DNA from: Thalia democratica
Lineage: Eukaryota
Assembly: GCA_965202585.1 (NCBI GenBank)
Contig: OZ241832.1
Location: 33,170,001-33,234,000 of the forward strand
Direction of reading: 5' to 3'
Length of the DNA stretch: 64,000 bases
The notes below the pieces were generated by a model. That model searched no databases, was not told the origin of the DNA, and saw nothing but the letters and a program-made list of their open reading frames with translations. Both the position numbers and the translations under genes were made by a program. Of this stretch, positions 16,251-53,700 are shown piece by piece. Each line of letters opens with the position of its first letter. Positions within the stretch are counted from its first letter, which is position 1.

Positions 16251-19200
16251 TTTCGAAATGCTCCGGCCCGCTGAGGACTATTTTTTTTGGATCCGGCCCG
16301 TCAACTATTTACGTTGCCCACCCCTAATCTAAAGTAATACAAAATTTTATAAATGATACTTTTTAATTGTTGTTAGCTTGTTACTAGTTCAAAAGATTGA
16401 TGTTTTAAAAACAACAGTTTTTATTGGTTTAAAAAAAAAGTGTTTTAGAAATAGTCTTCAGTTTTTGAAACCTTTTATTAAAAAAAAATACGGTTTGATA
16501 AAAAACAGATTAAAAAATAAATTTAGTTAATTTTCTTACTAAAAAATAAAACTGTAATTTTAATTAAATCACTTAAAAATTCGTTTTAGAAGTACTAGTT
16601 AACTATCTTATCTTATGATTAATTGTAATTTAGGTATTTTATTCTAGCTGTTTAATGAATTCAAAGTTAATTATTTTTAATGAAGGGTATATAGATCGAT
16701 AACCAATTTTTTATACCAGGTTAGTTGACCATATTTATAAGAGTTTAAACTTTGTGTTCAGTAAACTATTTGCATTTTAAATATTTAAAATAAGTTGAGC
16801 TGCTTGAAAAGTAAAAACTTTACTCTGGAAATTTCTTATTTAGAGAAACTTTAGCTAAAAACTAATAACTAATACGATTTATGATTCAATTACTTTTTAT
16901 AAAAGTTTTTCCGTACTTTTTTGTGTTCATTATTTAGTACCAGGCGCTATTATCAATGTACCAGGGGCGTAGTGTGGGGGGACACTGGCGCATGCTTACC
17001 TCTTAAAAAAAAGAAAAGTAGAGAAAAAGTAGAATGTTTCATCTTTATCCTTTAATCATTTAATTCCCCTGCTTAATCAGTTTTTTTTTTCAATTATTTT
17101 TTGAAGAAAATTTAACAATCTTTAAATACCAAACATACATATCCGGTGCGTAAGTGTCGTTGTATACCGGCTTTGATGAAAAACTCCATAAAAAATTGTT
17201 TTTTTAATTCACAAACTCCATATAAGTTAAGATTCAAAAAGTGCTCACTGGTGTTTGTGCACCGTGGTACTATAACAGTTGTTATTGATTTTTCTACAAG
17301 GAAAAATGCTAACATTTTGTAAACAAACAATCAAGCTAAACATATTCCATGATTATATTGTTTCAAGAATAAACAAATTTCATAAAAAAAGTAATAGGTA
17401 ATTAATAAAAAAATAAGATAATAATTAGAATAAACTGTACCAATGATAAATTATAAAATTAAAATTAAATGAAAAAAAAAGAGTTGATCAGATAGGAATT
17501 GATTGGGTGGGAATTGTGCGCGGGTTGGAACTTAGCGGTTGCCATTATGTACATTTTTCTAGACTGAAAATACTTAAAAACGTTTAACCTGTATAAAAAA
17601 TACTTTTAAGTATTTTAAATAAAATTTAAGGTAATATGTTTTATTTTCCTTTAACCACTTTAGAAGTTTGTGTAAATACAAAAAAAAACTTGTAAGATAA
17701 ATATTACAATTTACTTTAGTTTTTGAAAGTTTTTGTCATTGGATCGTGTGAAGCAGAAATCTGATAGTATAAATATAAAAAACTGACAAGTAAAACTAGT
17801 TTGTTGTTTAGTATTTCATTATAAAGTAATGTAATAAAAATACTACTTATTAAAAAAAAAAACAGTTAAATTATTTCTAGTTTTTTTGTACACTATTACA
17901 TATTTAAACACAACATACTTTAAAGACATGTTACAATTAAGCATAAAAAAAGCAATTTAATAAAGATTTAACATACAATAAAATATAAATAGTTAACTAA
18001 CATTATAAATTGAACACATAAAATTTATATTCAAGTATGTACAACATTTATAGTAAAAGCATATCAAACTAGTTTTTAAGATATCTACAAGCTTAATGGA
18101 CTTTTTATTCTCATCTTTATCTCATGTCTACGAAATTAAATTCAGATAACTTCAAAAATCTTTTTTTTTAAATAAAAAATACAGCTTATGAAGTTAAATA
18201 AATTATTTGTGTTCCAAAAACCTAAATACAATTTTATCTACTTTCTTTTAAGCTATTTATCATTGGAGATTGATAAATTTTAAGAAACTACAACTCTATA
18301 TACTATTCATAATATAAACACTTTTTTACAAAAATTAAAAAAAATACATTTTTCCAAGTTTTAAGCGACCTAATGCCAAGGTTTTTATGGTCATAAAACA
18401 ATAAACTGTTATTACCAATGTGTAATTTTGTTTCTAAAATACATGTTATTAGAATGTACATCATTAATAAAATAATTTAAATACCAATGTTTGTAAAAAT
18501 CTGCAGAGTAACAATTACGAGTAAAATCCATTGATTGAACGCTTCAATGCAGATTTGAAATTTCATTGCTAATTTTGGTCTTCTCACGCTAAATTACTCT
18601 TCTTTAAACTTAATGAAAGTGTTCCACTAAATATTTTACCACTCATTTTAAATTAATATAGTTCAGGTGATAATATCTAGTTTGGTAAAAAAGCTCTTAC
18701 ACAGTGTACACAGTAGTAAACATAATTAACATATATATTAAAAAATATTATCAAACAAAAAAAGAAATTAAAGTTATAAATTTTCTTGTTAAAAACAAAT
18801 GAAGAATATCAAAATGTTTTAAATATATACCATATAAAAAACTTCTTTGTAGAACAAGTAAACATAAAGCTTAATAAACTTTATTTTAAAATAATTCTTA
18901 AAAATTAAAACATTTTATTTTGAACTTTACCGTAAAAACTAGGATGGCAGATATTCTAACAAAACTTCAAGATACCTTTTAAAATATATATCTGCTGAAA
19001 ATGGTTTATCATATCAGTATTTTATAAATGTAAGAAATATCTAAAGTATTTGTTTTCAAATTGAAATTGCAATAAACTATAAAAGTAGCTGAAATAAAAC
19101 TAAGTTCAAATAATTATAGTACATTAAAGATACGTATTAAAAACTGATAAAAATGTATTTACTACTTGAATTAAAATCTATAATAAAATAAAAAAACACA

Positions 19201-25960: not shown

Positions 25961-28900
25961 TTTGTACACAGTTTAATGGGTTATATTTTTAAGATTATCT
26001 TGTTTTGTAAACTGTGCAAGCTTTCAATCTGAGATAAACTTGTATTTGATTTAACAAACGTGTTTGGTTAAAACACTAAAGGAGTCATTTTTAGGGTTTA
26101 TAAGTTAAATTTTAAGTAAATATAACAAATTTTAAGTTTATAGTTTTAAGTTCTTGTAAGTTTAAAAACTTTTTAAACTAATTAAGTAAGTTGTTAAGTT
26201 TTATTTTCTGTCTATAGGGAATCTGTGTTAAGTTTATTCAAAAAATTTATATTTAATGTATCATGAACTTAACCCGCCTTTTTTAGCTTTGTAAAGCATA
26301 TAAACAAGAAAGTAGCACCACCTGACTTAATCTTACGACTGTATAAATGTAAAATGAAACTATTAGACTTTGAATAAGTCTTAAAACCAAACTTCTAAAA
26401 GAAATCATCTACTTTTAAAAAAAAAGTTAACATGTTTCTTCACGTTTAAAACTTTCTAAAACATTTTTTTTAACGAAACCTGTTTGACCTTTGATACATA
26501 AACTCATTACTTGACCTACAAAAACTGAAGTTCATTAAGGTGTAGCAATTTTACATGTTAAAGTCGTATAACGCAATTTATCACAGCCTTAAACTTTTTA
26601 ATTTGTTTGTACATTGGTAGTGCGTTTTTGCTAAAGTTTTGTTGACTGATAGTAACACACAACTTAAAAAGTGTAAGTAAGTAATATAATAAAAATTTAA
26701 ATAAATTGATTGATAATACATAAAACAAAAAAGAAAATTATGGTATATAATTAGTCTAAAGTTACTTAAAATAAAGTTAACTAGCATTGTCAACTGATAG
26801 TTTTTGAAATATTTGAATTAATTAAGTTGAAAAGTTTTCGTTTGACTTCATTTTAATTGATATGAGGTCAAATGGAAACTTTTAAAGTTGATTAATCCAG
26901 ATTTTTCAAAAACTATCAGGTGACAATGCTAATAAAACTTCTTTTAATTTAAGTATATATATAATAAATATAATCATTAAAAAAAATCTTAACAGCTATG
27001 TTTTAAACAATCCATCTAAAACAGTTTCTAAAAACCTTCTTAAGTTTTGTTTTTAACCAAACACATACTATGTTAGAGTTTTTCAAAGCAAAATTTGTAC
27101 TTTTTATAAATTTTTAAAACTTAGTACTTCCGAAAGTATCTTAAACCGATTGCTCAAAACAGTAAGGTTTATGAGTTCATTTAAAGGTAAAACATCTTCA
27201 TTTTCAATGATTAATTGTATCAAGGCCAAATATTAATAAAACTACTTTCATCTTTTGATGTTTTTATGTTTTATACAGTATAGCATAAAAATCTAAGAGT
27301 TATTTTAAATATCAACGGCATAAAAACGAGTTACAATTTTTTTGATTATAAAAAAAGTTGTAAATAAAGTAAAAAATAATTGAAACTTTGTAAATGAGCT
27401 AGAATGAATAAGTGTAATATCTTAAATATCATTTAACTTAAGTTAAAGAGTGGAATTTTTTCTTCTTTTAAACAGTTAAGTATTAAAAAAACTATACAAT
27501 AACTTTTTGCAGAATGTGGTGTTATATTTTAATTAACTATAATGTTTCATACAGCAAAAATATTCATCTAACTTCATATGATATATATTATAAGTTTCGG
27601 CTCAAGTTTCATTACCACTTAAAGATAGTAGTTGTATGTTTTGCCTAAAATGTTTCGTAAAAAAATGTTTTACATTTGACAATGGTGTTTGTATTGTAAT
27701 AAATTTAATACAACGCTTTACTAATATACTTGTTATGTTGTTTTTAAACGTTTAATGTTTAGTACAATTTTTTTATAAACTTAGTTTCTCACTAACTTTT
27801 AAAAAGGTAACAAACATTTTTTTATTGTATATATTTAACTGAATTTTATAGAGTTTCAATGATTTAATTGTTTAAGCTTTTATGTTTTCATAATATGATT
27901 GTATTCTTACTTTTGAATGAATATCATAAAAAATATTAAATTTAAATAGTCGTAAAATTTAAAGTAAAAAACAGTCATAAATATCTAATTAAAAAAAATA
28001 TATAACTCTATTGTACATGTCTAAAGTGATAATTTTATTTTTACTGTGATACTAAATTCTTGTAAATGTTTGTTACAAGTTTTCCTATAAAATTCCAATA
28101 AAAAAAAATTTAAGTGTAACATATACTTTAAACAAGTTTAATTCTTTAATAAAATTATATACTAATTTGGGCTTACGTTTTTCTACAAAACAATACTAAA
28201 GTTTTTTTTTCTCTGACGGATTTTATGGTAAGTTTCAAATGAATAGAAACTTTAAATGTTTATAACTCAAACACTAAAATTGCATTTTTTACTTAAACAA
28301 TTTAGATATATTGAAATTTTAACTAAATAATAGTTAGATAAAAAAGACAAAAAAAATCTAATGTATAAAATTTTGTAATTATGATAAATATTTACTCATT
28401 TACTCAATAGAAATTTTTTCAGTTTGTGTTTTTGAGTTAACAAGTTCAGTTTAATTTTTTTTGTTAATTTTAACTTATTATAATATACAAAACAAAACTA
28501 CTACTTTAAAATTCTTTTTCACAGTTTTCAATTAAATTGTTTCAACTTTTTTTTTTTTTCTGTATTAAAGTATAAGTTTATAAAAATATCTTATTAGTGC
28601 ATCTGTAAAATTTTATTACTTACTTTTGAAATTTTGTTTATACGATTTTACTTTTTTGTTACAATATACAAAAATAAAATAGAAATAATTTTTTTGTTTT
28701 GCTTATCTTAAGCCAAAACAATTAAGTTTTTCCTCCTTAAGTTGTTGTTTTCGTAAGGTGTTTAAATTTAAATTAAACAAACAAACAAAAAAAAAAATAC
28801 TGAAAAATGTTTTTCCTTTGAAAACTTTTACAAGGAACATTTTAAGAAATAATGCAAACTGTTGTTACAGGTATATAGTTACTTTACTTGATAACTTAAC

Positions 28901-29930
28901 TTAGCTACGTTTACTTCATTCTTTTAATTAAACACTAACTTTCTTTAAACTTTTAAAAACGTTGTTAAAAGAAAAATACTACAAGTTCATGTAAACTTAG
29001 TTTTTTTGTATTAAAGTTCACTCGAAGTTAAGGTGATCTCAAACAAATAGTGGTCAAACTAAACCCTGTCAAAGACACGACGTAGATAAAAAATCAGCAC
29101 TGTATATTCGAAAAAAAAAACAAAAACATTTTAAGATTTTATACTTCAATCTTTTTTGACTCAACTTGTTGTATCTTTAAACTTGCAAAAATACGATAAA
29201 CCTTTGTCGATTACTTTATAATGCTATACTACAAATTAATGATGTACGTAAAATCGCTTTGTTTTGTAATAAATAGTTGTAAAGTACGACGGGCCGTTAA
29301 ATTATCTGTTTATAAAATCCGGCTCGTTACTGATAAAAGCCTGCCGACTTATGCTACAATTTTTCAAATCATTTAGTTTTTAAAATGTTATTTTAAATTT
29401 AATATAATATAAAACTAAAACTTTAAGATGTGATAAGATGATAGCTTTAATTAACCTTTTTGAACATTTTAAGCTTATGAATATGTTTTAAGATTCTAAT
29501 AGTTTTTGTTTTGCAATTTATGTCAGTAACGATTAAAAAAAATAACTCTGAAAAAATAAGATTGTTTTTTCACCAATAGAAGCTTACCAATTTAACTGTT
29601 TGTAGTAACAATTTAAAATTTCTACAATTACTACATTACACATTATCCAAGTTAAGCAAAAATTACATTAGTTTTACGTCGGTATATTTTAAGAGAAGGA
29701 AGTAATTACCATTTCGAAGTTAAAAAGAACCTTTTTACTCTTTAGTGTAATAAAAAGTGCACCTAATGAAAGCTTTTCATTTAAAACTGGCTGGAAGTTT
29801 TTTTTCTAAAGTTTGAAACAATGACTATCAAAAGTAGAATTTTAAAACATTTTACAGTTATGTTTGTAACAAGTTAAAGTATGTTGGGTACTATTTTATT
29901 TTTCTTCATACTGAAATTGTTTTTTATAAC

Positions 29931-30030
29931 TTTTGTGGACTTATATCAACTTGCTGGACAAAAAGTGATAAGGTATCCGTGGTGTGCAACTGGATAACCA
30001 AAAAGTTTTTCGTTCACCAGGTCCTAGGAT
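29931..30030. ncRNA. Candidate structured RNA, array block C copy 1 (H/ACA-like on -, SL-like on +)
   Basis: Two foldable hairpins; on the - strand ACACCA (ANANNA) and a terminal ACA. Motif and fold inspection only. Confidence 0.3.
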
Positions 30031-31602
30031 AAGATATTTTACATTTTTACTTTGATTAAAAAGTTTCGATTTTATAAATTTCAACCTTTCTAATTGTTTT
30101 TTATCAACAAACGTAGTGCTTTCTTACAAATAACTTGCATGAGTTTATTCAAACACAAAAAAAATTATTTTGGTATTTACATTCAAGTTTTAATTTATAA
30201 ATATTTTATTAGTACATATATAAAAGGTATGCATAATTTTATGATAAAAGCAATTTTTGCTTTCTACTTTTATAGCTTTTATTGTTTTGTTACAAAAAAA
30301 ATAAAAATTAGTTTTTAGAATTGACATTTCTTTCGCTTTTCTTTAGCTAAAAGTTTTTGTTTTTCCTCCCAAAATATTTGTTTCTGTAAGCTGTTTAAAC
30401 GAAATCTAAAACAGTAAACAAAATATTTTTTAACAGTAAATAAATCTTTAAAAAACTTATTGAATAAAAGTTTGAAATATAATATATAATTTTGTTACAG
30501 TTATTGATACCACTTAATAGCTAAACTAAGCATTTTTAACTTATACTTTTAATTGAATATTAATTTTCTTTAAAACAAACCTTTTAAAAATTTAATAGAA
30601 AAACACTTGTTTAAAGAAGTAAGTTTACATGAACTTGTAAGGTCACTCGAAATTAAGTTGATCTCAAATAAATAGTGGTCAAACTAAACCCTGTCAAAGA
30701 CACGACATAGATAGAAAATCAGCACTATATATTTAAAAATGATAATGTGACAAAATAAAAACTCGTTTAAGAACTTATACATAAAATAATATTTATTAAA
30801 CCTGCTTTCTTTAACAAAAAGTTATTAAAAATTTAAAAACCAAATGCTAAATTTAACTTTTAATTTCCGTTTAGTTACGATAAAGCTATGTCGCTCTACT
30901 CTATGATAGTTTAACTAGAAACTAATTTTTAAACGTGAAATCTGTTATTTTTGTTTTGTAACAAATAGTTGTAATTTACGACGAGCCGTGAAATTATCTG
31001 TTTATAAAATCCGGCTCGTTACTAATAAAAGCCTGCCGACTTATGCTATAGTTTTTTATTTATCTAGTTTTTTTTTTTAAACATTTAGCTTATTAATTGT
31101 TGTTTTAAAACTAAAGTGCTGAGACCGGTATGATAACAGCTTTTAAAATCTTTTTAAAAATATAAAGCTTAAGAACTAGTTTTAAAGTTTTAATAGCTTT
31201 TTTTTTGCAAGTTGTTTTAGTTACGATTTAAAAAATAACTAACTTAAAAAATATTTTTTCACCAATAGAAGTTAAACTATTACTGTTTGTAGTAACAGTT
31301 TAATATTTCTAACAATTACTGCATTACACCTAGTTCAAGTTATGTAAACATCGCATAAGTTTTACGTTTGTAAACTTTTAAGAGAAGCAAGTATTTACGG
31401 TTTTGAAGTTGAAAAGGTCCTTTTTAATCTTTAGAGTAATAAAAGTGCACCAATTAAAAGCTCTTATTTACAACTAGCTGAAAGTTCTTTTCAAAAATTT
31501 GGAATAGAGACTTTCAAAAGTATAATTTTAATACATTTGTAAAAGTAATGTTTTTTGAGTACTATTATAATTTTCTTCATATTAAAAATAGTTTTTTACA
31601 AA

Positions 31603-31700
31603 TTTTGTGGACTTATATTAACTTGCTGAACAAGACGTGATAAGGTACCCGTGGTGTGCGATTGATAACCAAATGGTTCTTCGTTCACCAGGTCCTAGGA
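31603..31700. ncRNA. Candidate structured RNA, array block C copy 2
   Basis: - strand reads hairpin-ACACCA-hairpin-ACA. + strand reads ATAAG|GTACC, hairpin, GTCCTAGGAC palindrome, ATTTTGA. Confidence 0.3.
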
Positions 31701-33256
31701 CGGAATATTTTATATTTTGACTTTGATTAAGAAGTTTAGATTTTTGTTAAGTTCACCCCTTTTAGCTGTTATTTATGGACAAATTTAGTGCTTTGAAATA
31801 ATTTGCATGAGTTTCTTCAACCACAAAATATTTTATTTTGGTTGTATTTACATTCAAGTTTTAATTTATAAAATATCTTGTTAGTACATCTGTAAAAGAT
31901 GTGTTTGACTAAAGCAATTTTCGCTACCTGCTTTTATAACTTTCAAAGCTTTTATTGTTTTTACTATAAAAAACATAAAAAAATAATTTTCAGAACTGAT
32001 ATTTTTCTTTCGCTTTTTTTTAGCTAAACGTTTTTATTTTTCCTCCCAAAATATTTGTTTTTGTAAGCTGTTTAAACGAAATCTAAAAAAGTAAACAAAA
32101 TATTTTTTTACTAGAAATAAATGTATAAAAAACTTATTGAATAAAAGTTTGAAATAATGATTCATAATGTTATTACAAGTAATTATACTACTTGATAACT
32201 TAACTAAGCATTTTTAATTCATACTTTTAACTGAGCATTAACTTCCTTTAAAGTAAGCCTTTTAAAATCTTAATAGAAAAACACTTGTTCAAAGAAGTAA
32301 GTTTACATGAACTTGTAAAGGTCACTTAAAATTTAGTTGAACTCAAATAATTAGTGGTCAAACTAAACCCTGTCAAAGACACGACATAGATAGAAAATTA
32401 GCACCGTATTTTAAAAATGATAATGTGACAAAATTAAAACTCGTTTAAGAACTTATACATAAAATAATATTTATTGAACCTGCTTTCTTTAACAAAAAGT
32501 TATTAAAAATCTAAAAACCAAATGCTAATATAAACTATTAATTTTCGTTTATTTACGATTAAACTATGTCGCTAACTCTATGATAGTTTAACTAGAAACT
32601 AATTTTTTAAGTGAAATCTTTTATTTTTGTTTTGTAACAAATAGTTGTAGTTTACGACCGTTCGTGAAATTATCTGTTTATAAATCCGGCTCGTTACTAA
32701 TAAAAGCCTGCCGATTTATGCTATAAGTATTTTAAACATTCAGCCTTTAATTGTTATTTTAAAATTAAGGTACTGAGACCGAAATAACAACAGCTTTAAA
32801 AAAAATTTATAAAAATTTTAAGCTTAAGAACTAATTCTAAAGTTTTAATAGCTTTTTTTTGCAAGTTGTTTTAGTTAAGATTGGAAAAATAACTAACTTA
32901 GAAAAAATATTTTTCACTAATAGAAGTCAAACTATTACTGTTTGTAGTAAAAGTTTAATATTTCTAACAATTACTGCATTACACCTAAACCAAGTTATGT
33001 AAACATCGCATAAGTTTTACGTTTGTAAACTTTTAAGAGAAGCAAGTAATTACGATTTTGAAGTTGAAATAGTCTTTTTTAATCTTTAGAGCAATAAAAG
33101 TGCACAAATTAAAAGCTCTTATTTACAACTGGCTGAAGGTTGTTTTCAAAAATTTGGAATAAAAATAAAAACTGTAGAATTTTAATACATTTGTAAAAGT
33201 AATGCTTGTTGAGTACTATTATAATTTTCTTCATGTTAAGAATAGTTTTTTACAAC

Positions 33257-33357
33257 TTCTGTGGACTTATACTAACTTTTGTGGACAAGATGTGATAAGG
33301 TATCCGTGGTGTGCGACTCGATAACCAAATGGTTCTTCGTTCACCAGGTCCTAGGAC
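33257..33357. ncRNA. Candidate structured RNA, array block C copy 3
   Basis: Same conserved boxes and hairpins as copy 2. Confidence 0.3.
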
Positions 33358-34920
33358 GGAATATTCTATATTTTGAGTTTGATTAAGAAGTTTTGATTTT
33401 TGTAAAGTTCACCCCTTTTAGCTGTTATTTATGAAAAAAATTAGTGCTTTGAAATAACTTGCATAAATTTCTTCAACCACAAAATATTTTATTTTGGTTG
33501 TATTTAAATTCAAGTTTTAAATTTATAAAATATCTTATTAGTACATCTATAAAAGATGTGTTTGATTTTATGAAAAAAGCAATTTTCGCTACCTTCTTTT
33601 ATAACTTTCAAAGCTTTTATTGCTTTACTATAAAAAATATAAAAATTAATTTTTAGAACTAATATTTTTCTTTCGCTTTTCTTTAGCTAAACGTTTTTAT
33701 TTTTCCACCCCAAAATATTTGTTTTTGTAAGCTGTTTAAACGAAATCTAAAAAAGTAAACAAAATATTTTTTACTAGAAATAGATCTTTAAAAAACTTAT
33801 TGAATAAAAGTTTGAAATATAATATATAAATTTGTTACAGTTATTGATACTACTTGATAGCTTAACTAAGCGTTTTTACCTCGTACTTTTAATTGAACAT
33901 AAACTTTCTTTAAAGTAAGCCTTTTGAAAATTTAATAGAAAAACACTTGTTCAAAGAAGTAAGTTTACATGAACTTGTAAAGTCACTCGAAATTAAGTTG
34001 ATCTCAAATAAATAGTGGTCAAACTAAACCCTGTCAAAGACACGACATAGATAGAAAATCAGCACTATATATTTAAAAATAATATCATGACAAAACAAAA
34101 ACTCGTTTAAGATCTTACACATGAAAAATATTTATTCAACCTGTTGCTTTTTTTAAACAAAAAACTATTAAAACTTAAAAAATAAATGCTAAATTGAACT
34201 TTTATATTCCCTTCAGTTACGATTAAGCTATGTCGCTTACTCTATGATAGTTACACTGGAAACTAATTTTAAACGTGAAATCTGTTATTTTTGTTTTGTA
34301 ATAAATAGTAGTAATTTACGACGGGCCGTGAAATTATCAGTTTATAAAATCCGGCTCGTTATAATAAAAGCCTGCCGACTTGTACTATAAATATTTTAAA
34401 CATCTAGTTTTTTTTTAAACATTTAGCTTATTAATTGTTGTTTTAAAACTAAAGTGCCGAGACCGGTATGATAACAGCTTTTAAAATCTTTATAAAAATT
34501 TAAAGCTTAAGAACTAATTTTATAGTTTTAATAGCTTTTTTTTGCAAGTTTTTTTAGTTACGATTCGAAAAATAACTAACTTAAAAAAATATTTTTCCCC
34601 AATAAAAGTTAAACTATTACTGTTTGTAGTAACAATTACTGCATTACACCTAAACCAAGTTATGTAAACATCGCTTAAGTTTTACGTCTGTAAACTTTTA
34701 AGAGAAGCAAGTATTTACGGTTTTGAAATTGAAAAGGTCCTTTTTAATCTTTAGAGTAATAAAAGTGCACCAATTAAAAGCTCTTATTTACAACTAGCTG
34801 AAAGTTTTTTTCAAAAATTTGGAATAGAGACTTTCAAAAGTATAATTTTAATACATTTTCAAAAGTGATGTTTTTGAGTACTATTATAATTTTCTTCATA
34901 TAAAAATAGTTTTTTACAAA

Positions 34921-35020
34921 TTTTGTGGACTTTTTTTAACTTGCTGAACAAAACGTGATAAGGTACCCGTGGTGTACGACTCGATAAGCAAAAATTTCTT
35001 CGTTCACCAGATCCTAGGAC
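34921..35020. ncRNA. Candidate structured RNA, array block C copy 4
   Basis: Same conserved boxes; the lower stem is partly disrupted. Confidence 0.27.
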
Positions 35021-36574
35021 GGAATATTTTACATTTTGACTTTGATTAAAAAGTTTAGATTTTTGTGAAGTTCACCCTTTTTAGCTGTTATTTATGAACA
35101 AATTTAGTGCTTTGAAATAACTTGCTTGAGTTTCTTCAACCACAAAATATTTTATTTTGGTTGTATTTACATTCAAGTTTTAATTTATGAAATATCTTAT
35201 TAGTTCATCTATAAAAGATATGTTTGACTAAAGCAATTTTCGCTACCTGCTTTTATAACTTTCAAAGCTTTTATTGTTTTTACTATAAAAAACATAAAAA
35301 TTAATTTTTAGAACTGATATTTTTCTTTCGCTTTTCTTTAGCTAAACGTTTTTATTTTTCCTCCCAAAATATTTGTTTTTGTAAGCTGCTTAAACGAAAT
35401 CTAAAACAGTGAACAAAATATTTTTTTACTAGAAATAAATGTATAAAAAACTTATTGAATAAAAGTTTGAAATAATGATTCATAATGTTATTACAAGTAA
35501 TTATACTACTTGATAACTTAACTAAGCATTTTTAATTTATACTTTTAACTGAACATTAACTTCCTTTAAAGTAAGCCTTTTAAAATCTTAATAGAAAAAC
35601 ACTGGTTCAAAGAAGTAAGTTTACATGAATTTGTAAAGGTCACTTAAAATTTAGTTGAACTAGAAATAAATAGTGGTCAAACTAAACCCTGTCAAAGACA
35701 CGACATAGATAGAAAATTAGCACCGTATTTTAAAAATGATAATGTGACAAAATTAAAAATCGTTAAAGAACTTACACATAAAATAATATTTATTGAACCT
35801 GCTGCTTTCTTTAACAAAAAATTATTAAAAATTTAAAAACCAAATGCTAATATAAACTTTTAATTTTCGTTTATTTACGATTAAACTATGTCGCTTACTC
35901 TATGATAGTTTAACTAGAAACTAATTTTTTAAGTGAAATCTGTTATTTTTGTTTTGTAACAAATAGTAGTAGTTTACGACCGGCCGTGAAATTATCTGTT
36001 TATAAAATCCGGCTCGTTACTAATAAAAGCCTGCCGACTTATTCTATAAATATTTTAAACATTTAGCTTATTAGTTATTATTATAAAACTAAGGTACTGA
36101 GACCGATATGACAACAGCTTTAATAAAAGTTTATAAAAATTTTAAGCTAAAGAACTAATTCTAAAGTTTTCATAGCTTTTTTTTTTTCAAGTTGTTTTAG
36201 TTACGATTTAAAAATAACTAATTTGAAAATAAATATTTTTTCACTAAGAGAAGTTAATTTAATACTAATGTTTGCAGTAACAGTTTAAAATTTCTACAAT
36301 TACTACATTACACCTAAACCAAGTTAAGTAAAAATTACATTAGTTTTACGTTGGTATATTTTAAGAGAAGGAAGTAATTACGATTTTGAAGTTAAAAAGA
36401 ACCTTTTTATTCTTTAGTGTAATAAAAAGTGCACCTATTGAAAACTTTTCATTTAAAACTGGCTGGAAGTTGTGTTCAAAAAGTTGGAATAGAGACTTTC
36501 AAAATTATAATTTTGTACATTTTTAAAAGTAACGTTTTTTGAGTACTATTTTAGTTTTCTTCAATTTTTACAAT

Positions 36575-36673
36575 TTTTGTGGACTTATACTAACTTTTGT
36601 GGACAAGATGTGATAAGGTATCCGTGGTGTGCGACTCGATAACCAAAAAGTTTTTCGTTCACCAGGTCCTAGG
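36575..36673. ncRNA. Candidate structured RNA, array block C copy 5
   Basis: Same conserved boxes and hairpins. Confidence 0.3.
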
Positions 36674-38045
36674 TCCAAGTATTTTACATTTTGACTTTGA
36701 TTAAAAATTTTCGATTTTTTTAAAGTTCACCCTTTTTGTATTGTTTTTTATCAACAAACTTAGTGCTTTCTTACAATTAACTTGCAGGAGACCACAAAAT
36801 ATTTATTATGGTTGTATTTATACTTAAGTTTTAATCTATAAAATATTTTATAAGTACATCTATAAAATATGTGTTTCATTTATGACAAAAGTAATTTTCG
36901 CTACCTGCTTTTATAATTTTAAAAGCTTTTATTGTTTTATTAGAAAATACATAAAAATTAAATTTTAGAACTGATATTTTTCTTTCGCTTTTCTTTAGCT
37001 AAAAGTTTTTGTTTTTCCTCCCAAAAAAATTTTTTTGAAGCTGTTTAAATGAAATCTAAAACAGTAAACAAAATATTTTTTACTAGAAATAAATCTTTAA
37101 AAAACTTATTGAATAAAAGTTTGAAATATAATATATAATTTTGTTACAGTTATTGATATTACTTAATAGCTTAACTAAGCACTTTTAAATTATACTTTTA
37201 ATTGAACATTTTTATTTTTTAAGTAAGCCTTTCAAAAATTTAATAGAAAAACACTTGTTTAAAAAAGTAAGTTTACATGAACTTGTAAGGTCACTCGAAA
37301 TTAAGTTGATCTCAAATACATAGTGGTCAAACTAGACCCTGTCAAAGACACGACATAGATAAAAAATCAGCACTGTATATTTAAAAATAATATTATGACA
37401 AAATAAAACCTCGTTAAAGATCTTACACATAAAATAATATTTATTCAACCTGTTGCTTTTTTTAAACAAAAAACTATTAAAACTTAAAAAACAAATGCTA
37501 AATTGAACTTTTATATTCCCTTCAGTTACGATTAAGTTATGTCGCTTACTCTATGATAGTTACACTGGAAACTAATTTTAAACGTGAAATCTGTTATTTT
37601 TGTTTTGTAATAAATAGTTGTAATTTACGACGAGCCGTGAAATTATCTGTTTATAAAATCCGGCTCGTTACTAATAAAAGCCTGCCGACTTGTACTATAA
37701 GTATTTTAATCATCTAGTTTTTTTTTAAACATTTAGCTTATTAGTTGTTGTTTTAAAACTAAGGTACTGAGACCTATATGATAATAGCTTTAAATATTTC
37801 TTTAAGCTTAAGTACTAATTTTAGGGTGTCAATAGTTTTTTTTGCAAGTTGCGATTTAAAAAATAACTAACTTTAAAAAAATATTTTTTCACTTACAGAA
37901 GTTAAACTATTACTGAATGTAGTAACAGTTTAACATCTCTAACAATTACTGTTTTACACCTGATTCAAGTTACGTAAATAAATCTACGTTGGTATATTTC
38001 TAAGAAAAGAAAGCGATTACCATTTTGAAGTTAACTAGAAACTAG

Positions 38046-38125
38046 CAGGGCTTCCCAAACTTTTTTTTAAATATTACCCCCTTTGAAGAAATTAAAAAAG
38101 CTATTGCCCCCTCCAACAAAATTAA
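38046..38125 (+). mobile_element. Truncated hAT MITE end interrupting array unit 6
   Basis: Begins CAGGGCTTCCCAAAC with a downstream ACCCCC motif. Array-unit sequence resumes at ~38200-38385. Confidence 0.55.
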
Positions 38126-39590
38126 TCAAATAGATATTATACTTTTTTTTTCTTGCTCTTCATCTACGACTCCAGAATATCTAGTGTAAGTTTCAAATAT
38201 ACTATTAAAACACATAAGACCAAGGAAGTTGTTTTAAAACATTTGAAAAAATTATTTTAAAAGTTAGAGCTTAAATAAATTTTTAAAGTAATATTGTTGG
38301 AGTAATATCTTAAAATTAGTTACACTAAAGACTGTCTTTTTTTACATTTTTGTGGACTTATATTAACTTGCTGCTAAAAATTATATATGTTTCGCTACTT
38401 TAATAGTAACGTAATATTTTATCAGAAAAGATTAAAAACGCTTTAGCAAGTTTTATTACATAATTTTTCATGCATATATTAGTGCGAACGTTTTTTTTTC
38501 AATCTTAAAACTTAGACAAACTATCTGTTTTAATAACAATATATAAAAAAAAAAACAATTTTTTAACTTTACGAATTAACAATTCAAATATTAAAATTAA
38601 TTTTAGTTAGAATAGTTTGTGTTTGTAGTATTTAATAGCATAAGTAGGCTTGTTTAACCTCAAAAAAAAATTCTTCGGACTAACCTTGTGAAAAGTCTCT
38701 GAAACAAAGCCACTAGTTGTAAACTTTATACGAATTTGTAACAGGTGGTAAAAATAAGTTGTATTTAAAAAAAGTATTCCTCAAACTCTAGTCTGTAATA
38801 TACACTACTTAGGTTCAAAAAGTAGCCCTATAAACTTTTAAGTAACAAAATTAAATTGACATCTTGTTCTAATGTAATAATGTTTTCTAACTTATGGCTT
38901 CGTAAGACTTGTCTAAAAGTATGTAGAACTTAAAATATTACAATATAAAATATACAACCTGCGTTTAGTTGCAAACAAAGTTCTTATTTTCATTATGATA
39001 GTTTTACTAGAACTTAATGTTAACCGTTAAGTCGAATAGTTTTAATTTGTTATAAATAAATTTAATTAACGACGGACCGTGAAATTCTCTGTTTATAAAA
39101 TCCGGCTCGTTACTAATAAAAGCCTGCCGACTTGTAGTATAAATATTTTAAATATTTTTCTTTTCAAATGGTACATGAGAACTGTGTTAAAACTAAAATA
39201 CTAAGATTTATATAATTTAAGCTTCAAATATTCTTTTTTAATGTTTTGATTTTATCAATTAGTTTAAGTTTTTATATAATTAAATATTTTTTATTAATAT
39301 ATTATTTATATTTTTTTGCAAACTAATTTAGCTACGATTTTAAATAAAAATTGAAGAAACTTTCTTTTTATCAATGTTATTTAAGCTATAGATTTTTATA
39401 GCAACTGTTTAGAATTGCTGATATTTGTTTTATTTCTTCAAATTCAACTATACTAAAATCATATAAGTTCAAACGTATAACATTTTTAAAAGCAGTAAGT
39501 AATTACGAACTTGAAGTAAAAAAGATTCAAATATTTTTTGTTTTTAAAAAAGTGTATAAGTTAAAATCTTTATAATCGAGACTGATCACA

Positions 39591-39643
39591 CCAGATCACA
39601 ACAGCTCTAACCAGATCACAACAGCTCTAACCAGATCACAACA
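39591..39643 (+). repeat. 20-bp tandem repeat (CCAGATCACAACAGCTCTAA x ~2.6)
   Basis: Exact copies at 39591-39610 and 39611-39630, partial copy at 39631-39643, immediately upstream of the hammerhead. Confidence 0.95.
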
Positions 39644-39661
39644 ATGGTTTCTCGCGACTAC

Positions 39662-39712
39662 GCCTGCCTGATGAGTCCTAACAAGGAAACAAGGACGAAA
39701 CCGGTCGTAGGT
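39662..39712 (+). ncRNA. Minimal type I hammerhead ribozyme (Penelope-like element / retrozyme type)
   Basis: Stem I GCCTGC (39662-67) / GTAGGT (39707-12). Core CTGATGA at 39668-74. Stem II GTCCT/AGGAC with a 12-nt loop. GAAA at 39697-700. Palindromic loop-less stem III ACCGGT. GTC cleavage triplet, with cleavage predicted after C39706. Confidence 0.88.
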
Positions 39713-40638
39713 TTACGCGGATTAATCAAACATACTCAACAAAAAACAAACAGGATCAAACATATTTAAACGAAAAACCGTTGGCCGATAAAATGTTAAT
39801 CCCCGACAACGAGCTAAAAAATTTCAAGCTTGTTTACGCAGCAACACGAGCGGAATTTTAACAGTAATACTTACAAACACCATAACCACTAGGAGGCAGT
39901 TCTTTCATCTTTTCAACGGCAGTTCACACGTATATTCGGAAACCTTCGACGAAGTTCGTCACCTTCCTCACTTTCGATACATAAATGTAGATTTTATTTT
40001 TTCACAAAACGTAAAAGGAAATTTTCAATATATTTTTAAAGCATTGAAATAGTAATAAATTACTTTCAAGTATCTTCAAAATAACTTTTGAACTTTTTTT
40101 TTTTATTAGGTATCTGTAAAAAAAAAGTTTAAATGCGTCTTTAAAACTAATATTTATTAAAGTTTTAATGAGATTTGCCGCATTAACACAATTGTAAGCA
40201 CTCGGCAGCCTTTTATGAGTTATGGACCAAATTTTATAAAAGGTAGTAGACCAAGCAAGTATTTTTTAAAACATTTTCATTTTAATTTGGTTTTTACTAA
40301 TAAACAAACAATAAGCAAAATAAAAGTTTAGTTTTTGATTTTTTTTGTTTAACTAAAGGATATAGATAGAACAAACTAAAAATGTTGTACAGTATAGGTA
40401 AAAATATATTTTTAAATTTTTTAATTTCTATTTAACTCAATTAAGTTTGAACTCTACCTAATTTATTTTATTTTATATAGAATTTATTTAAATTTAAATA
40501 AATTAAACTGTGAAAATTTTCAACTGTTCAAAAGTGACGTCACACAAAAGTGGATACTCGTGCAAAAGTGACAACCAAGTTGTGGGGAAATGATCGGGTA
40601 GTAACTGTTTCTGGTGGATATTGTGCGGTTAGGAATTG

Positions 40639-46058: not shown

Positions 46059-47681
46059 ATGAGGAAAGATGAGAATAAAACACCTCTTTCTTTTGTGGAA
46101 AGAATCTCACACCTTTCACACAAAAGCTTGCTTCAAAAACTGTTTCTTTTAAAAGTCTTAAACATCTTCTTGGTACAAACATGGTTTGTGCCTGATGAGT
46201 ACTGGCAATCGTTAGAAGTGGCCCACCGCATGGTCTTTGGCTACGGGCACTTGACCTGGGAATGGAAAGTCGGGTTGCGCTCGTACCTTTACACCTTGCT
46301 GTTTGCTTTTCCCTTCAAACTTCTGCAGGTGCTGGGACTCGACAGCTTGTTTCTGCTCAAGTTTGTGCCGAGGCTCATACAAGGCGGCCTGTCTGCCCTT
46401 TCAGAGTTCTTGTTTTACTTAACTGTGAAGAACTTGTTTGGAGCCACTACAGCCGCTTACTCTCTGTTTTGCTTTGTCACCAGCTGGTTTTGGTGGTACT
46501 GCTCAACTAGAACCTTGATAAACACTTTTGAAACGAACATTGTATGTATTGCTTTGTATTTTTACTCAAAACATGCCTTGCCATTAAAAAAAGTTACCGT
46601 TAGAAAAACTGGTAAAAAATTGTTAAGTAAGCATTTTAACATTGTTATAATAGATGCTGTTGTTGGTTTTTATGTGAGGCCTACTAGTGCTTCAGTTTGG
46701 CTTCCTTTATTTAGCATTTATTTGTTACAAATTTACAAAAACTACAGTTTTACATTGTGCTTAAAAGTCACGCTTCAAATTTTGACAAAGGCACTTGTTG
46801 TCTTTGCCTTTTTAGCTGTTGTTGACCGGGTTTGCTACGGCGAATGGGTGAGTGTGCATTTAAACTTTTTGTTTTTCAATTTTATTGACAACAAAGGAAC
46901 TTTTTATGGGGAGCATCCATGGCACTGGTACTTCACTCAAGGGCTGCCTGTCGTGTTTTCCTTCCACCTTTTGTTTTGCATTTACGGTTTGTGGCTCTAT
47001 GAAAGGAACGTAGAAAATGAAACTAAGAGCAATGCTGTTCAGCAACATTTTCTTCTCATATTTAAAAGCTCAATAGCCACCACGCTTTTACTCTACAGCA
47101 TTCCTGGCCACAAAGAGTTTAGATTTATTCTAGTACTGATGCCCTTTGTTTCATTCTACAGTGGCCATGCAATTTCAAGCTTGAAGAAAAAGTACTCAAA
47201 GTTGTGTTTCTTGTTAGTTTCGAACACCTTAGCTGCACTTTACATTGGCTTGGAGCATCAAAGAGCCCCGCTGATGCTCCTTGACCAGTTGCACGAGCTC
47301 AAACCGAAGCCTTACGAGCAAACTCTGTTTCTCATGCCCTGCCACTCAACGCCGTTTTACAGCCACTTGCATCTGCCGACCAGGCTGAAGTTCATCACGT
47401 GCGAACCGGACTTGGAAAACAGAGCCGGCTACAAAGACGAGTCTGTTTTGTTTTATGAAGACCCGAACAAGTGGCTCGAGAATGAGTACAAGTCAGGCTT
47501 TGATAACTGCAGTGCTGTTGGTTTGCCAAACTATATTGTACTGTATGATGTGTTGTACGATAGACTTTATGAAACTTTTTCTACTTGTTATTTTGAGTGT
47601 TACAGAACATTTCACACCCATTTTTCAGAAGGAAGAGTTGGTAAAAATGCTTTAATTTTATGTAAAAATAAGTTTCATTAA
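46059..47681 (+). CDS. PIGB: GPI mannosyltransferase 3 (Glyco_transf_22), 540 aa, single coding exon
   Basis: Uninterrupted ORF with PIGB/Gpi10 motifs: TWFVPDEYWQSLEVAHRMVFGYGHLTWEW, RTLINTFET, HPWHWYFTQGLP, HKEFRF, FLMPCHSTPFYSHLH, FITCEP. Confidence 0.96.
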   Translation: MRKDENKTPLSFVERISHLSHKSLLQKLFLLKVLNIFLVQTWFVPDEYWQSLEVAHRMVFGYGHLTWEWKVGLRSYLYTLLFAFPFKLLQVLGLDSLFLLKFVPRLIQGGLSALSEFLFYLTVKNLFGATTAAYSLFCFVTSWFWWYCSTRTLINTFETNIVCIALYFYSKHALPLKKVTVRKTGKKLLSKHFNIVIIDAVVGFYVRPTSASVWLPLFSIYLLQIYKNYSFTLCLKVTLQILTKALVVFAFLAVVDRVCYGEWVSVHLNFLFFNFIDNKGTFYGEHPWHWYFTQGLPVVFSFHLLFCIYGLWLYERNVENETKSNAVQQHFLLIFKSSIATTLLLYSIPGHKEFRFILVLMPFVSFYSGHAISSLKKKYSKLCFLLVSNTLAALYIGLEHQRAPLMLLDQLHELKPKPYEQTLFLMPCHSTPFYSHLHLPTRLKFITCEPDLENRAGYKDESVLFYEDPNKWLENEYKSGFDNCSAVGLPNYIVLYDVLYDRLYETFSTCYFECYRTFHTHFSEGRVGKNALILCKNKFH

Positions 47682-48102
47682 ACTATCTTTTTAAATATTA
47701 GCTGCTAAACTTAGTCAAGAAAATAATTTTATCTGCTTTTGTTTAAAAGTAACTCACACTTATTTTTTATTTTAGAACAATTTTATCTTTGTTAAAATAC
47801 AATTTGATGTCTTGTAATGCTATCTTGACCTATAAACTTTTTAGAATTTTTTGTTAGGATAATAAATTATATACATTGTGAGCCATTTTAGTGGTTTTAT
47901 TTCTTACATTTTTTGTCCCTTTTATTGTCTTATTATAACCTGATTTGTTGCAAAGATGCTGTTTGTGTTTTTTTTTTCATACTTACTCATACTTTGTTAA
48001 CTTCAATTTTTTTAACAACCAAACAACTTACTATTATTTTGTAAATTGATATTTTTTACAAAGAACTTTACTCTTAATCCAGTTTTAATTTATTTTGTGC
48101 AA

Positions 48103-48927
48103 ATGGATTTCAACCACTTCAAAGCGTTGCCAGGAAAAGACGAGCACGAAAACGACGTTCTCCACAAACCACCGCACGAGGGCAGCAGCAACACCGACCA
48201 CGTGATCTTCTTCCCGGGAGACATCCAAAACTTCGAGCTGAAGATGAGCTCCAACCCGCAGTCCAAGCACCACACCGCCTACTCCTTCGAAAACACTCTG
48301 GGCATTCTCGGCGCAAAGTTCAAAAAAAGCCACGTCTGGCTGGTGGTTCCCCGAAAACGAATATACGACATCATCAGCTGCTACACCAACTTCGTGCCCA
48401 CCGAGTCCGTCGTCTGCCTTCCCAAGCACTCCAGGGACCACGACGGCGTGGCAAATATGGCGCAGCTCTTCCAGTCCATGCTAAAAGCAATTAAAATACC
48501 CGATTCCGAAACCGTCAGTGTCACTTTGGCCGCCTTCAGCAAGGGCTGCGTCGTTTTGAACCAGGTGTTGTACGAGGCTTCGCGGGAAAGCACCGATGAA
48601 GAAACTGCCAAGTTTCTGAGCACGATCAGGTGCATGTGCTGGCTGGACGGAGGCCACAGCGGGACGGAGGACGACGTCCACTGGGTGACCGACGAGGAGG
48701 TGCTGGGAAACCTGACGTCGCTGAAGCACGCGGACTTTGCGGTGCACACCTCGCCCTACCAGACCAAGGACCCGCACAGGAAGTTCAAGGGGGAGCAGGC
48801 GGCGGGGTTCGTGGAAGCGATGAAGCGCAACGGGTGCAAGCTGCGGCACACCGAGCATTTCGAGGAGGAGCTTTCGCTGGAACTTCATTTTAAAGTCATT
48901 GACGTTTTCGAACCTGTTGCTTTGTAG
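48103..48927 (+). CDS. C2orf69: C2orf69/UPF0565 homologue (alpha/beta-hydrolase-like), 274 aa, single coding exon
   Basis: First ATG at 48103 within ORF 48046-48927. Motifs HVIFFPGDIQNF, SCYTNFV, FSKGCVVLNQ, WLDGGHSG, VHTSPYQ..DP.R and SLELHFKVI match the family. Confidence 0.88.
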   Translation: MDFNHFKALPGKDEHENDVLHKPPHEGSSNTDHVIFFPGDIQNFELKMSSNPQSKHHTAYSFENTLGILGAKFKKSHVWLVVPRKRIYDIISCYTNFVPTESVVCLPKHSRDHDGVANMAQLFQSMLKAIKIPDSETVSVTLAAFSKGCVVLNQVLYEASRESTDEETAKFLSTIRCMCWLDGGHSGTEDDVHWVTDEEVLGNLTSLKHADFAVHTSPYQTKDPHRKFKGEQAAGFVEAMKRNGCKLRHTEHFEEELSLELHFKVIDVFEPVAL

Positions 48928-53183: not shown

Positions 53184-53700
53184 TTTTGTACCACTAGTGT
53201 GTTTACGGTGGTTTTTTATGCAGGCGTGTTTTTGTGTCTATAAGCTCAGAACTTTTGTACATTAAATCTAAACTGGTTTGTTTTATGATAGAAAATTAAA
53301 TGTGTTTGTAAACAAGCAAATGGAACATAACTCACTTTGTTAAACAGAGATAATATCTTAAGAAATACTTTTGCAATTTTTTAGATGTTTTATAGCTTCT
53401 AATTTAGCTGTAGTACAACTTTTATTTGCACGTAGAAAGTTCTTACATTAGTTTGGTAGTGTTTAAATGTATATGTTCAAATTGTTATTTTACAAAAAAG
53501 TTAAAGAACACAACAATCTAAAAAAGTTCAGCTTAAAACTTGCTCAAAATTAATATTTTTTGGTTATAGTCTAATTATTGTACAAATAAAAACAACAGCA
53601 ATAATTTTATATCTGTCCTTATAAAAAGTACCAAAGTGGTAAACGACTTGAAAAACAAAACATTTTTCGTGCACCAGGTCCTAGGACCAAACATTTTGAG
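53184..53700. repeat. Highly diverged solitary copy of the tandem-array unit
   Basis: TTTTGTAACCACTAGTGTGTTTACG (~53184) resembles the start of block B. 53625-53700 resembles block C (GTACC...GTGGTAAACGAC...TTTTTCGTGCACCAGGTCCTAGGACC...ACATTTTGAG). Confidence 0.65.

Follow-up and report, generated by a model that had tools for sequence, protein, structure and literature searches.

Short conserved islands in a low-copy tandem array of Thalia democratica: candidate cis-elements in a decaying non-coding background

In Thalia democratica, a gene-poor gap between two divergently oriented genes is occupied by a tandem array whose unit has two short islands of its own, A of about 35-48 nt and B of about 60-75 nt. 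The third conserved block of this array, C, is a captured or inserted repeat that is foreign to the unit. As it stands, the array is a well-delimited conserved non-coding locus with a candidate function. Our leading reading, a tentative one drawn from the sequence, is that A and B are putative sequence-specific cis-elements read by proteins, B being possibly a TATA-containing promoter-like module. Protein-binding sites had been named as an alternative by the initial annotation, and it is this putative role that fits the island data best. The window, that is, the whole stretch of DNA that was analysed, is 64,000 nucleotides long, and the array and its surroundings are composed as follows.

Gene on the - strand flanking the array gap: rolling-stone-like gene
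Gene on the + strand flanking the array gap: Alg9-like mannosyltransferase gene
28499..38374, + strand: young tandem array U1-U6 (repeat families, MAFFT alignment, nhmmer)
28499-30111, 30112-31786 and 31787-33451: U1, U2 and U3, as the units were cut
33452-35109, 35110-36760 and 36761-38374: U4, U5 and U6, as the units were cut
38041..38223, unstranded: insertion of a different high-copy repeat in U6 (word depth ~80,000 at 38000-38199)
38623..39569, + strand: U7, an older decayed partial copy (nhmmer; profile positions 393-1349)
39662..39712, + strand: minimal type I hammerhead motif (Rfam RF00163)

The young array consists of six copies of a ~1.5-kb segment joined by five copies of block C, each ~160 nt long with its downstream tail. 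The spacing ranges from 1.64 to 1.69 kb (period about 1.66 kb) and seven units are recognisable, in agreement with the six to seven units of ~1.65 kb first described. The spacers were likewise confirmed to be AT-rich and to carry numerous substitutions and indels. U7 is only 56-58% identical to the young units and adjoins U6 without an intervening block C. U2, U4 and U6 on the one hand, and U3 and U5 on the other, are 94-99% identical, forming a two-unit higher-order repeat with mosaic exchange in which the nearest neighbours of the units are themselves a mosaic; there are therefore only about four independent unit lineages. The insertion in U6 displaces ~57 nt of the unit and shows many variable-length joints in the reads, and homology to the other units picks up again at 38224-38374. 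Leftward of position 28,499 alignments were colinear and not significant. Dedicated profiles run over the 64-kb window found no further copy of the unit or its blocks, except for a block C at 53.6 kb and a block B relic at 40.2 kb; a match at 56,840 (E 0.09), inside the intron preceding a thrombospondin-repeat exon, is probably due to chance.

Copy number was read from the X1 and X2 runs. Their reads cover the spacers, have an even depth of ~45-60 per contig and yield contigs of up to 34 kb, as expected of whole-genome DNA from the same sample and not of RNA. The summed word depth over the unit was ~80-370 per bin, compared with ~45-60 per single-copy contig; for the young array as a whole it was about 150-350 per bin. 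This is about the array's own copy number, meaning that the unit is low-copy and locus-specific, and a genome-wide or transposon-derived satellite was rejected on this ground. Along the array, the depth spiked only at block C, at the U6 insertion and at the hammerhead element. The latter, a repeated element at ~39580-39960 with a word depth of ~11,000, abuts the array and carries the hammerhead motif, whose score of 27.8 bits (E 0.0023) is below the gathering score of 34. This element is a neighbour or an insertion, separate from the repeat unit: the hammerhead core (CUGANGA...GAAA) was not found within 28499-39580. A tandem of hammerhead retrozymes or Penelope-like elements was thus discarded, since no unit has a ribozyme and the sole, sub-threshold hammerhead lies outside the units.

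We then compared the blocks with the rest of the unit by counting invariant alignment columns among U1-U5 (Fisher test). Outside the blocks 56% of the columns were invariant, and only 40% where the consensus was G or C, which made these the least conserved class. The invariant columns amounted to 44/48 in A, 50/59 in B and 55/68 in C (p against the spacers of 1.5e-7, 5.9e-6 and 4.4e-5, respectively). No part of the unit is richer in GC than the islands, and their excess conservation persisted when G/C columns alone were counted, 72-94% of the G/C positions within the blocks being invariant. The proposal that the islands are kept beyond neutral decay is therefore upheld (p from 1e-7 to 4e-5), although G/C sites lying outside them decay fastest, and the strings first quoted for them are present in the array (the block A 33-mer and the block B core were both found). 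That the blocks remain invariant even in the diverged end units is true of B only: A is at background level in U7 and C is missing from it. Local alignments between the blocks did not rise above shuffle level, and no motif common to them was found.

Block A is maintained only in the six young units.

30674..30706, unstranded: block A core, 33 nt, U2 copy
29049-29081, 32353-32385, 34014-34046, 35672-35704 and 37322-37354 (one mismatch): other copies of the block A core
Near 38769-38819: decayed block A relic in U7

The 33-mer occurs five times exactly and once with one mismatch, always inside the array, and the invariant run in U1-U5 extends over 34 columns. The relic in U7 is about 60% identical, which corresponds to background (nhmmer E 0.75). 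We recognised no motif in block A. Its 87-nt window folded no better than shuffles, and a longer hairpin gave z -2.6 in U2 and U4 as opposed to +0.3 to +0.5 in U1 and U3.

Block B is the more deeply conserved of the two native islands, its core being found in all seven units and persisting in an inverted relic beyond the array.

30967..31046, unstranded: block B, U2 copy
29275-29354, 32643-32721, 34307-34385, 35965-36044, 37616-37695 and 39061-39136 (U7): other copies of block B
40196..40270, - strand: inverted diverged block B relic beyond the array

From one side to the other, the block comprises the TTTATAAAAT box, an invariant spacer, the AATAAAAG box and GCCTGCCGACTT; conservation falls off sharply at 31042. 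It is the only part left intact in U7, where it is 93-100% identical to the young copies in a unit otherwise at 56-58%, and it reaches an identity of 1.00 in one 40-column window against a background of ~0.56. The relic retains the boxes TTTATAAAAT .. ACT. ATAAAAG. CTGCCGA with altered spacers; it was detected by nhmmer (E 1e-3 and 7e-5) with profiles excluding the relic itself, and by blastn (79.5% over 39 nt to five units). Each of the eight copies retains a perfect TATA box, except that the one in U3 has lost an A. Seen from the minus strand, the TATA, which reads TATAAA, comes after 36 invariant bases, and conservation ends abruptly at about -66; the block can be divided into a part of 21 nt, a spacer of 12 nt and the TATA.

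Block C behaves differently, with five copies only in the array, one at each junction of successive young units.

31632..31711, + strand: block C, U2/U3 junction
29960-30040, 33287-33366, 34950-35030 and 36605-36685: other array copies of block C
53625..53697, + strand: block C copy outside the array (nhmmer E 5e-7)

U6 stops exactly where block C would begin, and there is no C at its end or in U7. The bin containing the block C 32-mer at 36624-36655 had a summed word depth of ~89,000, compared with ~50 per single-copy contig, and among the genome's own reads many contigs diverge on both sides of this 32-mer. Block C thus belongs to a dispersed family of ~85-nt elements that number thousands in the genome; what had been taken for a conserved island of the array is a high-copy element located at the repeat junctions. 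It showed no significant similarity to the CRE-bearing element at 40.5 kb. Two identities were tried for it and rejected. As an H/ACA box RNA, its minus strand gave, in place of a hairpin-hinge-hairpin-ACA layout, a single irregular hairpin (z -1.2) without covariation, no Rfam H/ACA family matched, and thousands of copies contrast with the low copy number of snoRNAs. As a spliced-leader exon, it was less conserved upstream of the GT than downstream, both among the array copies and across the dispersed family. The family may matter more than A and B. Its 32-nt core, exact in thousands of copies, hints at a functional element dispersed through the genome of this little-known, AT-rich marine animal.

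The structure of the blocks was considered next. They had been described as foldable; B indeed folds in U2 better than shuffles (z -2.7 on the plus strand and -4.7 on the minus strand), but the block A window is at shuffle level and block C has a z of about -1.3. B and C form the most stable local folds of the unit; the block B helix did not surpass shuffled controls, 83-108 of 500 shuffles reaching the observed values. In each of the proposed hairpins the loop and one arm are invariant and the other arm varies uncompensated, a pattern that goes against the suggested selection on RNA structure, and alifold gave no compensatory pairs in block C on either strand. Rfam 15 had no match over the window at the gathering score and nothing on A, B or C at E<=10, and ARAGORN found no tRNA, in line with the earlier failure to recognise the blocks as 5S, tRNA or snRNA. 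A C/D snoRNA array, in which each unit is expected to hold a C box and a CUGA D box 40-140 nt apart, was rejected: no C box RUGAUGA (RTGATGA) exists on either strand of 28499-39580, hence no C...D pair. A spliced-leader RNA gene array was rejected as well, there being no pattern of a conserved leader exon before a GU donor and an Sm site; canonical Sm-like motifs fall outside the blocks and are missing from U1.

As for splicing, each of the units U2-U6 has TTTGTTACAG or TTACAAG at ~118 nt from a GTAAGT. The reported acceptor/donor pair about 120 nt apart therefore exists in these five units and fails in U1, which has no GTAAGT because a 22-nt donor segment is inverted there. The regions of these motifs have an ordinary conservation of 0.70-0.78, the same as their surroundings, and GTAAGT has a chance rate of 0.45 per kb per strand. 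The non-coding host gene with repeated exons that had been envisaged thus finds no support in these motifs, the donor being inverted in U1. Protein-coding exons were also discarded, since single-base deletions break the plus-strand frame, across B in both U3 and U4 and across C in U2; changes between the array and the relic are flat with respect to codon position (6/3/3 for positions 1/2/3), and Pfam returned no convincing match for the eight translated frames.

Other sequence collections were searched as well. The share of the sampled words of 30,660-31,050 was 0.09 in one marine metatranscriptome, 0.27 and 0.06 in marine metagenomes, and 0.21 in organism B, the last value fitting islands-only conservation and a uniformly ~5%-diverged relative equally well. 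Given the share in the metatranscriptome, some part of 30,660-31,050 may be transcribed, which would equally fit an RNA product. No match was obtained for the B and C patterns in metagenome contigs, for the A, B and C patterns in viral contigs, or for the block strings in the full-text literature.

How did this locus arise? A ~1.5-kb non-coding segment was duplicated in tandem between the divergent genes, and through unequal exchange, in steps of one or two units, the array expanded to six young copies; beside it lie an older decayed copy and the inverted block B relic. The ~85-nt dispersed element was captured by, or inserted at, the five junctions. A and B would be under purifying selection as linear sequence and not as structured RNA, and the minus strand of B may have the geometry of a proximal element plus TATA. 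Several points speak against a promoter: TATA-type motifs are common in DNA that is 75% A+T, the seven array copies, unusually for a promoter, do not differ in the bases from the TATA to the expected start, and the putative minus-strand transcript downstream of B is less conserved and without conserved structure. An unlikely extension is that B, perhaps with A and the C family, represents genome-wide tiny autonomous promoter modules with short, fast-evolving, unstructured transcripts. If so, the array would be a mini-gene cluster in which the promoter and not the product is under selection.

Islands of 35-85 nt conserved in decaying ~1.7-kb units have the classic look of a small-RNA array, and the blocks could be snoRNA- or snRNA-like genes repeated within a host transcript in the manner of SNORD115/116 in mammals. 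The fold of B in U2, the stability of B and C, and the 9% of A-B stretch words in the metatranscriptome run are consistent with this; we consider it somewhat unlikely in view of the Rfam and C box results, the uncompensated erosion of the hairpin arms, the ordinary conservation of the splice-like motifs with the U1 donor inverted, and the thousands of copies of the C family. A plus-strand transcription unit, in which C would be a dispersed promoter-like module, A an RNA part or short exon and B a 3'-end signal (AATAAA, followed after 13-20 nt by a cleavage site and then by a T-rich tract), would account for the AATAAA inside B, the sharp fall in conservation 13 nt further on, the T-rich variable sequence that follows, and the pyrimidine-rich ...AAATAG acceptor-like site that precedes B in U1-U6. 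It is quite unlikely, since B is intact in U7 and in the relic, both devoid of A and C; moreover the relic reads CATAAA, U7 no longer has the acceptor-like AG, and there is neither an open frame nor a codon signature.

The islands could also have no function and be by-products of concerted evolution, namely gene-conversion hot spots (possibly GC-biased) or mutational cold spots. The array is certainly homogenised, as is evident from unit pairs with 94-99% identity and from the mosaic of nearest neighbours, and GC-biased conversion would favour its GC-richest parts; however, with the lowest conservation of all at the G/C sites outside the blocks, such a bias could act in three short tracts only. 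Conversion tracts are typically longer and less universal than these invariant tracts, which measure 34-60 nt and occur in every lineage; the private changes flanking block B in U7 mean that it is not a recent conversion, and the inverted relic preserves boxes rather than a tract. We therefore hold this explanation to be very doubtful. Highly improbable is a transposon-derived satellite, be it a non-autonomous Helitron, a hammerhead retrozyme or a Penelope-like tandem. The adjoining hammerhead-bearing repeat, the high copy number of block C and of the U6 insertion, and the subterminal inverted repeat of block B would suit it, but outside C the unit is at array-level depth and hence not dispersed, the array has no hammerhead core and the B hairpin a 23-nt loop, a 1.66-kb unit far exceeds animal retrozymes (a few hundred nt), and there are no ORFs or terminal repeats.

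If A and B are indeed cis-elements, or small genes, the array would be a natural experiment in which several paralogous copies share one 35-75-nt element while the sequence around it decays, the functional core being marked to single-base resolution.

Three kinds of known systems come close to this locus. Animal hammerhead retrozymes and Penelope-like elements have been described (PMC5680766; PMC8557442; bioRxiv 10.64898/2026.07.22.740005), and this genome is reported to be rich in such elements. As in those elements, a type I hammerhead occurs in a repeated element, here at the array's right edge; unlike them, the 1.66-kb unit has no ribozyme and is not dispersed. Tandem small-RNA arrays include 5S rDNA, U1/U2 snRNA and spliced-leader RNA genes, as well as the SNORD115/116 host-gene arrays of mammals, and the array shares with them kilobase tandem units, near-invariant short islands, decaying spacers and homogenisation via unequal exchange. 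It differs from them in having only six or seven copies, an island that is a dispersed repeat, and no known RNA family, C/D boxes, Sm site in a block or covarying pair. External promoters of the snRNA type, as in U6-type genes, combine a ~21-bp proximal sequence element with a TATA at about -30; the features sought were a ~21-bp block near -55, a TATA near -30 and a small RNA gene ~25-30 nt downstream. The putative 'gene' downstream of block B, unlike U6-type genes, is AU-rich, poorly conserved and unstructured; it is in its geometry that the minus strand of block B resembles an snRNA-type promoter.

Repeat finding over 27–41 kb returned many families of direct repeats with a start-to-start spacing of 1.64–1.69 kb, in a window that is very AT-rich (G+C about 25%). 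Tandem Repeats Finder missed the array solely because its longest period is 500. Seven units, each cut at the same distance from the CGGCTCGT anchor, could all be aligned; together with the repeat spacing, this bears out the tandem array proposed in the initial annotation. It comprises six young units (U1–U6, 28,499–38,374) and an older, decayed partial copy (U7, 38,623–39,569). Pairwise identity was 0.87–0.92 among U2–U5, 0.80–0.85 for U6, 0.69–0.76 for U1 and 0.56–0.58 for U7. A sliding nearest-neighbour analysis revealed a two-unit higher-order repeat: U3 and U5 are 95–99% identical across the first two-thirds of the unit, and U2, U4 and U6 are 94–99% identical. There are also mosaic switches between units (for example, over one window of 150 columns U1 is 95% identical to U5). 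The array therefore holds only about four independent lineages, namely the a-type units, the b-type units, U1 and U7, and it is undergoing homogenisation by unequal exchange or conversion.

The true span of U6, determined with a profile from U1–U5, is 36,769–38,374. This unit stops exactly at TTGCTG, where block C, one of three short conserved islands (A, B and C), starts in other units; the young array thus consists of six segments of about 1.5 kb linked by five block C copies, each with the tail downstream of it (about 160 nt together), and U6 is followed by the older copy without an intervening block C. A duplicate of two such segments would have been present first, the C element would then have been inserted or captured at one junction, and the period containing it would have been amplified via unequal exchange. 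A second high-copy repeat breaks U6 at 38,041–38,223; this insert is a piece of about 180 nt (word depth about 80,000) that replaced about 57 nt of the unit, and many contigs carry internal deletions of variable length (57–79 nt) at 38098–38179.

We then compared the columns inside and outside the blocks among U1–U5 (Fisher test). Outside the blocks, 56% of the columns were invariant, and those with a G/C consensus were the worst kept (40% invariant versus 61% for A/T), as AT-biased mutation would predict. The blocks had 44/48 (A, p 1.5e-7), 50/59 (B, p 5.9e-6) and 55/68 (C, p 4.4e-5) invariant columns, an excess that persisted when G/C columns alone were compared, and the longest invariant run, 34 columns, lies within block A. 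The array itself and the initially claimed excess of conservation in its islands over the spacers are therefore both real. The block strings originally quoted are all present: the 33-nt core of block A has five exact copies and a sixth with one mismatch, all inside the array, the core of block B is found in 7/7 units, and that of block C has five copies in the array and a further one at 53,663. The blocks had also been described as nearly invariant even in the most diverged end units, which holds for block B only. Against the U1–U6 consensus, in 40-column windows, the identity of U7 peaks only once, at block B (0.93–1.00); it climbs gradually from the upstream side and drops abruptly past GCCTGCCGACTT. 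Block A of U7 is at background (about 0.62–0.68, profile match only at E 0.75) and block C is missing.

Contigs of two runs were placed on 34,000–39,990 and their word depth was summed in 200-nt bins. Depth per contig was even, at about 45–60, over blocks and spacers alike, and both runs behave like genomic DNA from the sample that was sequenced. Most bins totalled only about 80–370, that is, the array's own copies, and a genome-wide satellite was therefore ruled out. Depth spikes were seen in the following bins.

36,600–36,799: about 89,000, at the 32-mer 36,624–36,655 within block C
38,000–38,199: about 80,000, at the second high-copy repeat in U6
39,600–39,799: about 11,000, at a hammerhead-bearing repeated element

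Many contigs leave the 36,624–36,655 32-mer on both sides into similar, diverged sequence; given the spike, block C is a member of a family with thousands of copies, and another copy lies outside the array at 53.6 kb (53625–53697). Block C is better kept than its surroundings, and the exact family 32-mer is retained in one array copy, which suggests that the family core itself is constrained. This 32-mer, GTGGTGTGCGACTCGATAACCAAAAAGTTTTT, is kept exactly in apparently thousands of genomic copies; a family-like flank upstream of it carries a CRE-like GACGTCA and a TTTAAAAG box, and on its downstream side there are a GGTCCTAGGACC palindrome and a T4 run.

Genes are sparse over the roughly 25 kb that contain the array; this is the intergenic space of a divergent gene pair, a setting in which regulatory DNA is to be expected. 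The neighbouring features are listed here.

Minus strand: rolling-stone-like gene, one bound of the stretch (PF21534, E 4e-11)
46059–47681, plus strand: intronless Alg9-like mannosyltransferase ORF, the other bound (PF03901, E 2e-91)
48046–48927, plus strand: intronless C2orf69-like ORF, 365 nt after the Alg9-like ORF
39662–39712, plus strand: minimal type I hammerhead (Rfam RF00163, 27.8 bits, under the gathering score of 34)

The Alg9-like and C2orf69-like ORFs have a G+C of 40–53%, versus 25% for the genome. The hammerhead is made up of CTGATGA, a 4-bp helix II, GAAAC, a very short helix III and a 6-bp helix I. It is preceded by a perfect tandem repeat (20 nt × 2.7, 39590–39643) and lies inside the repeated element (39580–39960) adjoining the array, which looks like a retrozyme or Penelope-style insertion. 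A GC-rich short repeat of ATCCGGATCCGG-type motifs, probably a MITE-like dispersed element, is present at 4800–5570, 13850–14020, 16190–16310, 61380–61520 and 62680–62900, and appears in the Tandem Repeats Finder rows at 5473 and 13961. Exons for Sushi, thrombospondin type 1 and fibrinogen C-terminal domains (Pfam E 1e-5 to 2e-12) on the plus strand at 55505–63173 belong to a multi-domain gene of the secreted or immune type.

The initial annotation had proposed a candidate repeated non-coding RNA cassette, resembling a host gene with intronic small RNAs, and selection on RNA structure or on protein-binding sites. Rfam gave no match at gathering thresholds and, in permissive searches, none on the blocks; a tRNA search found none, and neither a RUGAUGA box, sought on both strands, nor a hammerhead core was found in the array. 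The block B hairpin (ACGAGCCG / CGGCTCGT) pairs perfectly in U2 and U6; in the other units the 5' arm reads ACGGGCCG, ACCGGCCG, ACCGTTCG or ACGGACCG and the 3' arm is constant. In an eight-sequence alignment this helix is at shuffle level, its pairing being reached by 83/500 shuffles and its double changes by 108/500. Folding of the 87-nt window of block A is also at shuffle level (z 0.0 and −0.4), a longer minus-strand hairpin around it gave z −2.6 in U2/U4 and +0.3 to +0.5 in U1/U3, and the block C hairpin, GUGGUG.../...CACCAG, has a z of about −1.3 with zero compensatory pairs. Selection for foldable RNA is thus not supported. As for repeated exons, the acceptor-like and GTAAGT motifs do recur about 118 nt apart in U2–U6, but they sit in ordinary conservation (0.70–0.78), GTAAGT occurs elsewhere in the window at 0.45 per kb per strand, and in U1 the 22-nt GTAAGT-bearing segment is inverted, the opposite strand reading CTAAGT; a motif that recurs in young copies through shared descent is no evidence for splicing. 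This flip (GAAGTAAGTTTACATGAACTTGT in U2–U6, ACAAGTTCATGTAAACTTAG in U1; 28985–29010 versus U2 30612–30636) is a small inversion of a near-palindromic stretch, which leaves the plus strand without the "donor". Altogether, none of the tests run supports the RNA-cassette and host-gene reading. Coding was rejected as well: the plus-strand frame across block B is open in most units, single-base deletions break it in U3 and U4, an upstream ATG in this frame meets a stop in U2, U3 and U5, the frame has no Pfam match, and block C is frameshifted in U2.

The whole-unit profile had only two matches outside the array, block C at 53,636–53,699 (E 5e-7) and an inverted block B relic on the minus strand at 40,184–40,240 (E 1e-3, or 7e-5 with the U1–U5 profile), the latter also matched by blastn. 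In the alignment, the relic retains TTTATAAAAT, ACT, ATAAAAG and CTGCCGA with the intervening bases changed, a pattern that matches conserved boxes rather than a conserved helix or a reading frame. Array-versus-relic changes fall 6/3/3 on codon positions 1/2/3. About 300 nt from the relic, three CAAAAGTG(A/G) repeats (40520–40600), without similarity to block C, embed a perfect CRE palindrome, TGACGTCA, at 40535. A weak block B-like match at 56840, in an intron ahead of the thrombospondin-repeat exon of the multi-domain gene at 55505–63173, is probably due to chance.

Public runs were searched with 30,660–31,050, and the share of sampled words was 0.79 and 0.48 in the genome's own sample, 0.27 and 0.06 in marine metagenomes, 0.09 in one marine metatranscriptome and 0.21 in a second organism (organism B), a value fitted equally well by conservation of the islands only and by a relative that has diverged evenly by ~5%. 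Neither the metagenome nor the viral contig collections scanned yielded a match to the block patterns, and a full-text literature search for the block strings returned nothing.

The reading we tentatively favour, at somewhat less than even chances, is a locus-specific higher-order tandem duplication in which the islands native to the unit, A and B, are cis-elements under selection and B is promoter-like. Small RNA genes are a live rival that we hold to be unlikely. All eight copies of block B have a perfect TATA box (U3 reads TATAAAT, one A being lost), with TATAAAA as the plus-strand and TATAAA as the minus-strand reading, inside the palindrome TTTATAAA. The plus strand can also be read as AATAAA followed by a cleavage zone and a T-rich downstream tract, and under either strand reading block B behaves as a linear signal. 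The 36 bases that precede TATAAA on the minus strand do not vary within the array, and this run ends abruptly; the TATA would thus sit at about −30 and the conserved block would cover about −66 to −31, the geometry of external snRNA-type promoters. What speaks against this reading is the minus-strand sequence downstream of B, which is rich in A and U, not as well conserved as the "promoter" and devoid of consensus structure (−1.9 kcal/mol).
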